DNA of 64,000 bases, taken from Obrimoposthia wandeli. Taxonomy: Eukaryota. This document shows positions 3,285-51,359 of the stretch, one piece after another. The notes beneath the pieces are model-generated. The model was not told the DNA's origin. It made no database searches and worked only from the letters and a program-made list of their open reading frames with translations. Position 1 is the stretch's first letter. Every line of letters begins with the position of its first letter. Location: NCBI GenBank assembly GCA_977020255.1, contig CDROCS010001647.1:1-64000 (forward strand). Reading direction: 5' to 3'. Both the position numbers and the translations under genes were made by a program.

Positions 3285-4219
3285 GATCTTTAACTCAGTG
3301 CAAATTGATTTGACTTTACTGCTGGCCAATTTACCGTCTCTTTCTCTGGATTAGCGATCACACCAGAGTGAGATAACCCGGCAGCTTATGCTGGTAATTG
3401 GCATCTTGAAGATTTCGGAAACCAATTCATCCACTGAAGAAGAAAGAGCGGACGCAGGAGTTTGGATCCCAGGGTTGTATCTCGATAGAAGGTTGGCGGC
3501 TTGTGCTAAATATATAATCCTTACACCACCGCAAAGAGGTGCGCTGCTGTGCGCGGTGCTCGCTCTCAACATCGTTATGAATTAAAGAATAGTGCTCCGT
3601 CAAACTCTGACTGTGATAGAGTAAAACAACTATTACATTCCAGTATTGGGTAAGCAAAATTTAGTTTATGGTTATATATATACCGGGCAGTATAAGGGCT
3701 TCGCTCCGGGGCGCTATCAAGGCACACTCATTGGGGTATTAAATAATAATACCGCGAATGAAATATCGAAGGAACGTACACCTTTAATTATCAGGTTAGG
3801 CCATATGCTCCGAGCTAAAATGGCAGCAGCAGTTGGAACCAGTCATCAGGAACATCAGTGCGTCTTCGCCCGGGGATTTAGCCATAAAAACAATTAAATG
3901 ATTTACCCATATATATGAAATGGCCTTGTCGATTATGACACGGTATTTGACCTTTGAATAAAGGCAGTCTGGTGAGTGGTACCGGAATAAGCAAAACAAG
4001 GTGCCTTACCAGCTCTATTTTCGCGGTAAAGAATCGGCAATGAGTCAAACGGCGTTTAGGCTAAACAACCCGTCAATCTTCTCAACAAAAATGATCATGT
4101 CATTTTTCAAAATGCAAAGCCAAACCTTTTGCTCGTGCAGGGGGCAGTATGAAGATATAGTCACTATCAATTTTAAATGCCGAGATAGCATGTATTTGCT
4201 TGAAAGAGTCAAAGTTTAG
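3285..4219 (+). pseudogene. Probable fimbrial tip adhesin/pilin-domain gene, frameshifted
   Basis: Fragments YGYIYTGQYKGFAPGRYQGTL, KVPYQLYF and C-terminal GQYEDIVTINF resemble pilin G-x-Y-x-D-x-I-T-x-x-F ends; lies just after the usher. Boundaries approximate; could be two genes. Confidence 0.45.
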
Positions 4220-4386
4220 GCCTGAAGAATAAATCAGTTTAGTAAAAACGCTAAAACTCAACAATATCGATATTCAATCTTTGCCTGTGTGATATCGCTA
4301 TTATTAACTCATCAATTTGGTGCTCGCACTGAATAACCCGGCATTAATCATTATTAATAGACGAGATCATCATCGCCAATACAGCC

Positions 4387-48202: not shown

Positions 48203-49240
48203 CTAAGCAGCTTGTGTGTTTTCTACGGTATTATCAGTGCTATTTATAACGCCATCTATAGCGCTATCTATAATGTTAGCGCTTGACTGAATTGCTGGTG
48301 GATTCATTAACCATGGCGTTAAATTGTTTGCCATTGTAACTTCACTTTCATCCAACCACTGGTAGCGTTTGGTATACATTTTACGCTTGGTTTTCTTCAG
48401 TGTTAGAGGATCTTTTCGGGGCGTAAATACAGGTAAGCCATAGAAGTAAGTGTCTATTTTAGTCGCTTCAAACTCGTCCCACAGACCATCATAATCGAAA
48501 GTAACAGAGCTACGTTTCGAGCCGATATAACGTAATGCTTGGTAGATATGGCCTTTGTTGGAAATCGCTTTTACTTCATCGACGCCTAAAACTCGAGCTA
48601 GCATTAAGGCCATTTCAACGAGTAATGATTTAGTGCGTAAACCGTGTAATGATTTGGTTAATACCTTAATCAATGCGTGACGATCTTCGATTGAATCTCG
48701 TGGGCCTTGTAGCATACCGATATGCATTGTTTTAGTTGTAGTACCTGAAATGTTACAGGCTAAAGCATACACACTTTGGTCTTTGTCATTCACTAAACGA
48801 ATACCTAGGCCACCTTCACGGCTGGCTCCGCGATATAGTTGCACACGGTATGTGTCCCCGTTTAAGCTTTCAAAGTCTAAAATTGTTATCCCTTTACTAG
48901 AAATAACGGCATTTGAGTTTTTGCCAAAGGTATCATCAATATATTGATAATGTTCCGTAATATGTTTGATGCGCTCTGAATTAGACCAATTTACGCAAAG
49001 AAAAGGCTTTAAAGGTTTTTCTAGGATCTCGGGATTGTTGGCTAAAATTGGCTTTAAATTATCATTAGCAAACAAAGTTGTCATTGCTTCGATGGCTTTA
49101 CCGTTAGTCGCTGCCCAAAAGTAGAATCTCGCTTTCTTTTTTATTTTCTTCAGGCCTTTGCTTTTTGGGTAAATCAGGTCGGCGAGTTCAGAGAGATTAG
49201 TTTTAGACATCGATTTTTTGTTCCTAGTAAACCACCTCAC
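48203..49240 (-). CDS. VirK/YbjX (DUF535) family protein, copy A (start may be 49210)
   Basis: KPLKPFL..NW...R...I..HY, REGGLGI, IGMLQG, K.LHGLRTK.LL, DYD.LWDE, KRKMYTKRY.WLD. Confidence 0.88.
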   Translation of the reverse strand: MRWFTRNKKSMSKTNLSELADLIYPKSKGLKKIKKKARFYFWAATNGKAIEAMTTLFANDNLKPILANNPEILEKPLKPFLCVNWSNSERIKHITEHYQYIDDTFGKNSNAVISSKGITILDFESLNGDTYRVQLYRGASREGGLGIRLVNDKDQSVYALACNISGTTTKTMHIGMLQGPRDSIEDRHALIKVLTKSLHGLRTKSLLVEMALMLARVLGVDEVKAISNKGHIYQALRYIGSKRSSVTFDYDGLWDEFEATKIDTYFYGLPVFTPRKDPLTLKKTKRKMYTKRYQWLDESEVTMANNLTPWLMNPPAIQSSANIIDSAIDGVINSTDNTVENTQAA

Positions 49241-49554: not shown

Positions 49555-49893
49555 CTATTGTATGCAAACACCCTTCATTAATATTTTGTTATACCAACTT
49601 AAAAAACTATGGTCGGTAGAATATTGCGTGCTTACTGCCGTCAATTCACCATCACACTGGGCTATAAGTGATTGGCGGGCTTCATCAACATAGTTGGTGT
49701 TCGCGGCAAAGCCTAAAATCACATGTTGTTTAGTACTTGCTTCGACGTATTTATAATCGAGACCTGCTGGGATCACTTGATCAAAACCGTCGGTGTTTAC
49801 CATGTGAATACTACTGGTGCAGCCATTTAATAACAGTACTGCAGACAGTAATACCAAGGTGCTAAATGTATTTTTTATCACGCTATTTATCAC
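49555..49893 (-). CDS. Hypothetical lipoprotein L3 (third of a paralogous trio)
   Basis: Lipobox LNGC; GTG start overlaps the TGA of L2; QC...C pair. Confidence 0.8.
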   Translation of the reverse strand: MINSVIKNTFSTLVLLSAVLLLNGCTSSIHMVNTDGFDQVIPAGLDYKYVEASTKQHVILGFAANTNYVDEARQSLIAQCDGELTAVSTQYSTDHSFLSWYNKILMKGVCIQ

Positions 49894-50204
49894 ATTCTGT
49901 CCTTAGGTAGGCTGCAATACCCACTGACGATGACTTCGCGTTTAAATACTAGAAGATAACTAGTGGTTTGGTGTTTTGTAAAGACACCACTGATTTTACC
50001 ACCAACACATTGGTCTTTTAAATTATCTACAGCTCTGTCGGCAAAGTCATTTTGTGTGGTGAAATTGAGGAATACCCAGTCATGTGCATTAGCTTCAACA
50101 AGCTGGCCTTTGTCTTTTGGGATTTGCGTCATTGATACTGTGTTTAAACCAACACAGCCACTGAGTGTTAGGACGATAAATAGTAAACAAAATTTACGGA
50201 TCAT
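49890..50204 (-). CDS. Hypothetical lipoprotein L2
   Basis: RBS TAAGGA overlapping the L1 stop, ATG 50204, lipobox LSGC; QC...C pair. Confidence 0.82.
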   Translation of the reverse strand: MIRKFCLLFIVLTLSGCVGLNTVSMTQIPKDKGQLVEANAHDWVFLNFTTQNDFADRAVDNLKDQCVGGKISGVFTKHQTTSYLLVFKREVIVSGYCSLPKDRM

Positions 50205-50214
50205 GATTAATTCC

Positions 50215-50631
50215 TTAGAGTATACAATCGGCATCGATACGCACAATTTCACCACTCGCAATGGCATAATCATTAGCTTCTCGAACACTACGAATGGCGG
50301 TTATTTTGCCGGATTGGCATTGTGCATGGAGTTGGTTTAGTACGTTTTGAGCATAAGCATCATTAAATACCGGGTTACCTGTTCTAGGTCCCATATTCAT
50401 AAGGGCCCAGATAGTTCTGAGAGCTTCCACCTCATCACTGCCAGCTCCATTACTTAATACGGCGTCGGTAAGCGCTAAAGTCGCGTCTACATTGATGGTA
50501 TTTTCAGATACTTTGACTGAAATTGGCTTTAGCTTTCCCTGGCTCTGGTCTATATCACCGATCTGGATGTGATCCATGCGAGCGCAGGCTGAGAGCAATA
50601 ATATAGGGGTAAGCAACAAATATTTTTTCAT
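50215..50631 (-). CDS. Hypothetical lipoprotein L1
   Basis: Lipobox LSAC; QC...C pair; ~35 aa insertion relative to L2/L3. Confidence 0.82.
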   Translation of the reverse strand: MKKYLLLTPILLLSACARMDHIQIGDIDQSQGKLKPISVKVSENTINVDATLALTDAVLSNGAGSDEVEALRTIWALMNMGPRTGNPVFNDAYAQNVLNQLHAQCQSGKITAIRSVREANDYAIASGEIVRIDADCIL

Positions 50632-50766
50632 TGTAAATGTCCCATTGATGTAAGCGAACGAGTGGCTGACGCTACCTTTATTTAGTATTCGCCGGACTCG
50701 TTGTCATTTGTTTGTATAGAGATATTGTAAACAGGGCGGCCGCGTTTGGGGGTAAGCTTGTGTATG

Positions 50767-50782
50767 GATTTGTCAACAAATC
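50767..50782. promoter_or_regulatory. Palindromic operator-like site GATTTGT-CA-ACAAATC
   Basis: Perfect 7-2-7 inverted repeat containing a minus-strand TTGACA, between the divergent lipoprotein trio and PACE gene. Confidence 0.45.
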
Positions 50783-50939
50783 TACTGATGGAGTTTTATG
50801 TATCCGAAAAACGGATGGAAGCTAACTTTAAGTTGTGGTTAATTGAGATAGAATGACGGTCATAATAAAGTTTTAATAGTATATGCAGAGTAATTACGAT
50901 GATTACAGCATAAAGAATAATGATTTGGAGAAGACTGAA

Positions 50940-51359
50940 ATGAGAACAAGATTAGACCGTATTAGACACGCTATTTTATTTGAAATAATTGGCCTACTGG
51001 CAATCATGGGCGTGTTAAGCCAGCTTGGTTTTGAGCTCGGTCATGTCGGTGTCATGGGGGTATTGTTTTCGGTTGTCGCAACGGGTTGGAATTATGTTTA
51101 TAACTTAGGTTTTGATAAGTACATGTTGAAAAAAATGGGTACGGTAACCAAAACAACCCTGATCCGTGTTGTGCATAGCCTTGGTTTTGAAGGCGGTTTG
51201 CTGTTTCTTACTATCCCGTTTATGGCATGGTTTTTAGATCTGAGCTTATGGGATGCATTTGTGCTTGATATCGGTATGGTAGTGTTCTATTTGTTTTACG
51301 CTTATGGCTACAACTTAGCGTATGACAAGATATTCCCAGTGCCGACGACTACGGCATAA
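50940..51359 (+). CDS. PACE (AceI-like) efflux transporter, second copy
   Basis: MRTRLDRIRHAILFEIIG, WNYVYNLGFD, RVVHSLGFEGG, YNLAYD. Confidence 0.92.
   Translation: MRTRLDRIRHAILFEIIGLLAIMGVLSQLGFELGHVGVMGVLFSVVATGWNYVYNLGFDKYMLKKMGTVTKTTLIRVVHSLGFEGGLLFLTIPFMAWFLDLSLWDAFVLDIGMVVFYLFYAYGYNLAYDKIFPVPTTTA

Follow-up and report, generated by a model that had tools for sequence, protein, structure and literature searches.

The window (the whole 64,000-nucleotide stretch of contig CDROCS010001647.1 that was analysed) carries, on the minus strand between 49555 and 50631, three tightly packed open reading frames that are evident from a direct reading of the DNA and are here called L1, L2 and L3 (Table 1). 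The three-gene operon sits on a Moritella chromosome; when one genome was scanned per species, L2 proved to share 97% identity with its Moritella dasanensis counterpart. The mechanical reading frame of L2 extends upstream to a GTG at 50288 but, on sequence grounds, the ATG at 50204 is the better start, because it has AAGGA 7 nt upstream, opens on a normal signal peptide and gives a protein of the length seen in its homologs, all of which have 100–105 residues. The first-pass annotation had described an overlap of the L1 stop with the ribosome-binding site of L2, and of the L2 TGA with the L3 GTG, and both are seen in the sequence. The L1 stop (TAA, 50217-50215) lies within a TAAGGA placed 7 nt before the L2 ATG, leaving a gap of 10 nt between the two genes, while L3 has its own AAGGA (49900-49904) 6 nt upstream of the GTG. 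Similar spacing is found elsewhere: the L1-L2 gap is mostly 9–17 nt in related loci and -4 in distant ones, and the L2-L3 gap in related loci ranges from -4 to 12 nt. The G+C fraction of the trio (0.409) matches that of the window (0.404), so that there is no compositional sign of recent import, and an HMM search of all window reading frames found no further copy of L1, L2 or L3.

Table 1. Features of the L1-L2-L3 locus and its surroundings (positions are those of the window).
Feature	Position	Strand	Description
DUF535 (VirK/YbjX family) gene	48203-49240	-	E 3e-77; 314 nt downstream of L3
L3 gene	49555..49893	-	GTG start, 112 aa; lipoprotein precursor
L3 Cys pair	49564..49656	-	Cys80 (49654-49656) and Cys110 (49564-49566); invariant in L3 alignment A3
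L3 lipobox	49819..49830	-	L-N-G-C, residues 22-25; +2 residue Thr
L2 stop/L3 start overlap	49890..49893	-	TGA and GTG; common bases GTGA
L2 gene	49890..50204	-	ATG start, 104 aa; lipoprotein precursor
L2 Cys pair	49914..50009	-	Cys66 (50007-50009) and Cys97 (49914-49916); invariant in L2 alignments A1, A4
L2 lipobox	50154..50165	-	L-S-G-C, residues 14-17; +2 residue Val
L1 stop/L2 ribosome-binding site overlap	50212..50217	-	TAAGGA; AAGGA is the L2 site
L1 gene	50215..50631	-	ATG start, 138 aa; lipoprotein precursor, largest paralog, with inserted segment
L1 Cys pair	50224..50319	-	Cys105 (50317-50319) and Cys136 (50224-50226); invariant in L1 alignments A2, A7
L1-specific insertion	50368..50529	-	Residues ~35-88; BLASTP gaps against L2, hhalign, invariant GPxTG
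L1 lipobox	50584..50595	-	L-S-A-C, residues 13-16; +2 residue Ala
7-2-7 palindrome	50767-50782	.	GATTTGT-CA-ACAAATC; holds a TTGACA box on the minus strand
PACE/BTP-family transporter gene	50883-51359	+	PF05232, E 3e-44; divergent from L1

With a signal peptide and a lipobox (criterion [LVI][ASTVI][GAS]C), L1, L2 and L3 all qualify as lipoproteins. The three lipoboxes had been noticed earlier and can be read directly in the sequence, and virtually every homolog has an equivalent one. Over 41 loci, the residue at position +2 is Ala or Ser in L1, Val, Met or Thr in L2, and Thr or Ser in L3, and it is never Asp. Under the Lol-avoidance rule of E. coli, Asp at +2 withholds a lipoprotein from outer-membrane sorting. 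Going by this +2 rule alone, the inner leaflet of the outer membrane is where the lipid anchors of all three proteins would be expected.

All of the shared motifs quoted in the first-pass annotation are present in L1, L2 and L3, respectively: the strand near the N-terminus (ISVKVSE, VEANAHD, VEASTKQ), the helix end (LHAQC, LKDQC, LIAQC), the segment GKITAI, GKISGV or GELTAV, and the end of the last strand (IDADC, VSGYC, MKGVC). Exactly two cysteines follow the lipobox cysteine (in 41 of 41 L1, 41 of 41 L2 and 39 of 40 L3 proteins), at the helix end and the last-strand end as had been claimed, and in the modelled fold they probably form one conserved disulfide per protein that joins these two ends. 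In the L1 family alignment (A2), the invariant positions are C16, D28, Q29, G32, GPxTG, C105, RE, GE and C136. Each class also has its own conserved polar motifs, namely GPxTG and SVRE in L1, TKHQTT/FKRE in L2, and SxH...STxxGFxxWTNK in L3. A conserved strand begins only 2-3 residues past the lipidated cysteine in all three, and the segment directly after that cysteine (CARLDHVQIGDIDQSQG, CVSLNSVSLTQIP, CTHSIHM) is among the most conserved parts of the proteins. The extra segment that had been ascribed to L1 is real, appearing in BLASTP as gaps of 33, 6 and 1 residues against L2. It consists of a variable amphipathic stretch followed by a conserved NMGPRTGNPV loop, in which GPxTG is the most conserved motif of L1, being invariant even in the most distant L1 proteins.

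The earlier proposal that the three proteins are mutually homologous holds up in both pairwise and profile comparisons. BLASTP gives E values of 6e-7 for L1-L2 and 3e-8 for L2-L3, and 0.17 for L1-L3. For profile comparison by hhalign, one alignment was made per family (A2 for L1, A4 for L2, A3 for L3), each from 23–24 genomes; the full-length scores are 97.3% (E 2.5e-11) for L1-L2, 98.8% (E 6.6e-17) for L2-L3 and 93.6% (E 2e-7) for L1-L3. Because signal peptides could inflate these values, the comparison was repeated on the mature parts, giving 95.7%, 97.3% and 81.4%, respectively. The aligned cores comprise the helix and the last two strands, with both cysteines in the same columns. These similarities are beyond chance, and homology of all three is well supported at the sequence level: by direct comparison for L1-L2 and L2-L3, and by way of L2 for L1-L3.

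The trio is widespread and its order is strongly conserved. A word search with L2 returned 67 clusters, and scanning one genome per species gave 37 loci, to which four further contigs were added. In all 41 of these related loci (individual loci are given below by three-digit handles such as L026), L1 and L2 keep their places in the order L1-L2-L3. L3 is complete in 39 of the loci and is truncated or undetected in only two, both of them draft Vibrio assemblies. The loci represent Moritella, Bermanella, Oleispira, Colwellia, Vibrio and Photobacterium, together with members of the Oceanospirillaceae and Saccharospirillaceae. A profile search with the mature L2 and L3 alignment over 1.84 billion representative proteins found 309 clusters at E <= 0.001 (193 at E <= 1e-10), while a word search with the L1 profile (A7) found 647 clusters at 90% identity. 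The distant relatives of L2 and L3 fall into two clearly separate types, L2 and L3, the latter being the commonest class (99 of the best 150 representatives), and no natural fusion of trio members occurs among these 150.

Ten distant members were viewed within their contigs. HMM scoring confirmed the order L1-L2-L3 in five of these contigs (L044, L045, L046, L047 and L048), including an Oligoflexales MAG (L047) and a 'Deltaproteobacteria' MAG (L048); GC content in the five is 47–68% (40% in the window), and in several of them genes overlap by 4 nt. Judged by gene size alone, two further JGI contigs also match the trio (166-121-101 and 137-106-106), and one short contig has L2 followed by L3 up to the contig edge. 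In each genus sampled, homologs occur as a rule in ordered trios and not singly. A lone L3-type gene is found in L042 (72% GC, positions 4001-4375), with neither L1 nor L2 as a neighbor, which means that at least one member may work alone. The L3-type domain of this gene scores 72 bits, but its N-terminal strand is L1-like (CSQLHRAQLDEID), and the gene may be chimeric or a single-gene variant.

Maximum-likelihood analysis of 14 trios places every L1 protein in one clade (support 100/100) and every L3 protein in another (100/99), with L2 between them; the L1 row of L048 was trimmed 13 residues too far in the input, which did not affect the result. Since the positional classes form clades, the triplication must be older than all of the sampled trios, and the module has been inherited or transferred whole. 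A single genome, or even a single contig, can hold two separate trios, which indicates that duplication or acquisition involves the entire module. Complete trios of different subtypes are seen together in contig CAWKOX010000033.1 (L018 and L031) and in the Oleispira MAG JBLGBO01 (L020 and L022). In the tree, L1, L2 and L3 of Moritella group with those of Bermanella and other Oceanospirillaceae (L002, L013), with L2 69% identical, and stand apart from the copies of Colwellia, Vibrio and Photobacterium (L024, L035, L038). This position suggests a past transfer of the whole trio, although its GC content equals that of the window.

In contrast to the trio itself, the flanking genes vary from genus to genus, so that the trio appears to travel as a unit. 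When the flanking reading frames of 42 loci were clustered all-against-all, no neighbor was shared across genera other than a PACE/BTP gene with a LysR gene, common to Moritella and Bermanella, and a DUF535 gene, common to Moritella and one Vibrio lineage. A DUF535-family gene, which lies downstream of the trio in the window, also follows it in two Vibrio JCM loci (L026 and L028), a recurrence that may reflect inherited synteny or a weak connection with the envelope. In Bermanella (L002 and others), a BTP gene and a LysR regulator flank the trio on the L3 side in convergent orientation, so the PACE/BTP gene stands on different sides of the trio in Moritella and Bermanella. Both neighbors are weak, contextual hints to function.

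Searches of known families gave no assignment for the three proteins. Pfam and NCBIfam scans of L1, L2 and L3 (Pfam at E <= 1), a Pfam scan of 47 aligned L2 and L3 members at E <= 10, and PDB sequence searches with single proteins and profiles gave only chance-level matches, and the literature search found no description of such a trio or of relevant RcsF-like or YbjQ-like lipoproteins. The view of the first-pass annotation, that the proteins are uncharacterized and belong to no named system, agrees with this lack of Pfam, NCBIfam and PDB sequence matches.

An AlphaFold2 model of mature L2, made with a 47-row alignment, has a pLDDT of 71.7 and shows the order beta-beta-alpha-beta-beta, in which a short N-terminal strand leads into a long hairpin, followed by a helix and then another long hairpin. 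The N-terminal strand has a pLDDT of only 44 despite its highly conserved sequence. The two cysteines are at the C-terminus of the helix and the end of the last strand, sites that are neighbors in this topology, making a disulfide plausible. The L1 model (pLDDT 57) has this core too, plus one additional helix and a disordered stretch, and its insertion is modeled at a pLDDT of about 33–56. With the L2 model, Foldseek found nothing in the PDB at E <= 0.001 (best E 0.8–1.0), the most probable match being 1vr4 of the YbjQ family (probability 0.92, TM 0.60). In the exhaustive VIA-align search, the top three were YbjQ/DUF74 proteins (3qkb, Z 7.4; 2gtc, Z 6.6; 1y2i, Z 6.4); such matches cover 72–78 of the 88 residues at 17–22% identity. 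They were followed by a SIMPL-like protein (6.1), RcsF (5.3, with the RcsF chain of the IgaA complex within 5.3–5.4), Francisella FvfA (5.0), dodecins, Lpp20 (4.0) and SrfN (3.8), and all of these Z values are below 8, where a match may reflect merely a common arrangement. The L1 model weakly matches the same proteins, with SrfN best at Z 4.0, but its confidence is too low for such a search to carry meaning. The structural matches are modest evidence for a fold class, a YbjQ/RcsF-like fold as modeled, and not for membership of a family.

RcsF, DUF1471, YbjQ and DUF74 have been grouped as one fold, with YbjQ and DUF74 reported as pentamers (PMC4092069), and YbjQ-like pentamers are also described elsewhere (PMC2954204). 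The YbjQ/DUF74 proteins (UPF0145, PF01906) are similar in size to L2, appear from its model to share the beta-alpha-beta-beta core and, as known homopentamers, provide a precedent for oligomers of this fold. They differ in having no signal peptide, lipobox or disulfide and in being encoded by single genes rather than a trio, and the PF01906 profile matches none of the 47 L2 and L3 members (E <= 10) and none of the window proteins (E <= 1). E. coli RcsF (PDB 2y1b) is a small outer-membrane lipoprotein with a disulfide-stabilized alpha+beta domain, 70 residues of which align to L2. RcsF carries two disulfides, formed by four cysteines, as well as a long disordered N-terminal linker, and is the product of a single gene that acts through IgaA. 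By comparison, L1-L3 have two cysteines each, lack the linker, are three paralogs and show no match to the RcsF Pfam profile. DUF1471 proteins (YhcN/BhsA/SrfN) belong to the same fold class (PMC4092069) and have several paralogs in enterobacteria. They are, however, secreted periplasmic proteins that are not lipoproteins and lack the cysteines, any sequence match and the fixed trio; the DUF1471 Pfam profile matches no window protein and none of the 47 members. Lpp20 of Helicobacter pylori (HP1456) is a small lipoprotein with a weakly similar fold and no sequence relation. It is encoded with two neighboring small envelope proteins, which interact with it and are not known to be paralogs. The first-pass annotation had likened the topology to Bor, TRL and RcsF. 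The RcsF part of this survives loosely, through the structural match at Z 5.3, while Bor and TRL find no sequence support: only one of the 47 members matches TRL (PF13146), at E 0.075, and Bor is not listed in the same scan. Judging from the models, the trio resembles small, disulfide-stabilized outer-membrane lipoproteins of the RcsF/YbjQ/DUF1471 fold class, but it lies outside the RcsF, YbjQ and DUF1471 families, since profiles, cysteine pattern, linker and cellular location all fail to agree.

The interpretation we prefer, and to which we give about an even chance, is that L1, L2 and L3 constitute an ancient, self-contained module of three predicted outer-membrane-anchored periplasmic lipoproteins, probably working as a hetero-oligomer. 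It is proposed because the presence and order of the three genes have been kept since before the sampled lineages diverged, and because overlapping or nearly overlapping genes favor coupled translation. Each mature protein would be one small alpha+beta domain, in which an N-terminal strand is followed by a beta hairpin, a helix and one more hairpin, and a predicted disulfide would link the helix end with the last-strand end. Coupled translation would yield the three proteins in a fixed proportion, and they would then assemble next to the membrane, the subunits possibly joining by strand pairing as in pentameric YbjQ/DUF74. Ordinary lipoproteins have a loose tether directly after the lipidated cysteine. 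In the trio, this segment is highly conserved yet is the least confident part of the monomer model, which would fit strand pairing with a neighboring subunit. The assembled trio would act as one unit of the envelope, for which scaffold, sensor and ligand binder are candidate roles. A fuller version of this reading is held only tentatively: an outer-membrane hetero-oligomer of YbjQ/RcsF-like paralogs that pair by their membrane-proximal strands, with the GPxTG of L1 as a working site, and serving an envelope function that has no known machine. On that version, the assembly would be common to cold-marine Gammaproteobacteria and Bdellovibrionota-type bacteria.

The main rival is that the three paralogs are co-regulated but act separately, as monomers or as homo-oligomers of their own, each with a different ligand or partner, in which case the operon would serve co-expression and not the stoichiometry of one complex. 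This is possible, though we do not regard it as probable. Each class does have its distinct conserved polar motifs, the closest folds are homo-oligomers (such as the YbjQ-like homopentamer) or monomers, and the L3-type gene of L042 stands alone. Against these points is the strict retention of all three genes, in order and with 4-nt overlaps, across very distant lineages, a pattern that fits subunits better than independent paralogs, since the latter tend to be lost or rearranged individually.

An unlikely alternative is that the trio acts as an RcsF-like sensor of envelope stress, reporting damage to a signaling partner in the inner membrane. Such a role would accord with the structural matches to RcsF and to the RcsF chain of the IgaA complex (Z 5.3–5.4), with the lipid anchor and putative disulfide, with the response regulator and putative sensor kinase upstream of the trio in Oleispira-type loci, and with the DUF535/VirK-YbjX gene that follows it in Moritella and in a Vibrio. 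Against it, the RcsF Pfam profile does not match, there are two cysteines instead of four, and a conserved strand directly follows the lipidated cysteine where RcsF has its long linker. In addition, no signaling gene is a conserved neighbor of the trio across genera. That the trio is a lineage-specific tandem duplication of an unimportant small lipoprotein, devoid of functional meaning, is very improbable and was rejected: the proteins are small and lack functional annotation, but there are 647 L1 clusters and 309 representative clusters for L2/L3, and the classes sit on long, fully supported branches, each kept from Gammaproteobacteria to Oligoflexales.

What is new here is the lipoprotein family and its obligate three-paralog organization, the fold class being already known. 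The family has hundreds of members, yet it has no Pfam or NCBIfam entry. The joint, ordered arrangement of its paralogs predates the sharing of the trio between Gammaproteobacteria and Oligoflexales-type lineages and has been kept ever since, a strong sign of one conserved unit. Small outer-membrane lipoproteins are often key parts of envelope machines or sensors, as with RcsF, LptE, the Bam lipoproteins and LpoA/B. If the interpretation is correct, a new family, and possibly a new complex, would be added to the biology of the envelope; the trio has no known phenotype and no direct bearing on a long-standing open question.

Two smaller features of the locus concern its DNA rather than its proteins. 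The upstream palindrome, which had been described as dedicated to the operon, is present, but it is not conserved in the nearest relatives: M. dasanensis and a Moritella MAG (L005, L006) have a different right arm and retain just the embedded TTGACA. In 250 nt, by our estimate, chance would supply about 0.6 perfect 7-nt inverted pairs within 40 nt. The palindrome is probably no dedicated operator, a role rejected for this lack of conservation among Moritella relatives. No good -10 element was found at the proper distance from the TTGACA, and a consensus scan gave no convincing sigma-70 promoter or terminator for the operon. Lastly, a 125-codon reading frame runs antisense to L2 and L1 (49963-50340, plus strand) and is open also in 12 related loci; rather than being a gene, it most likely mirrors the conservation of the opposite, coding strand.
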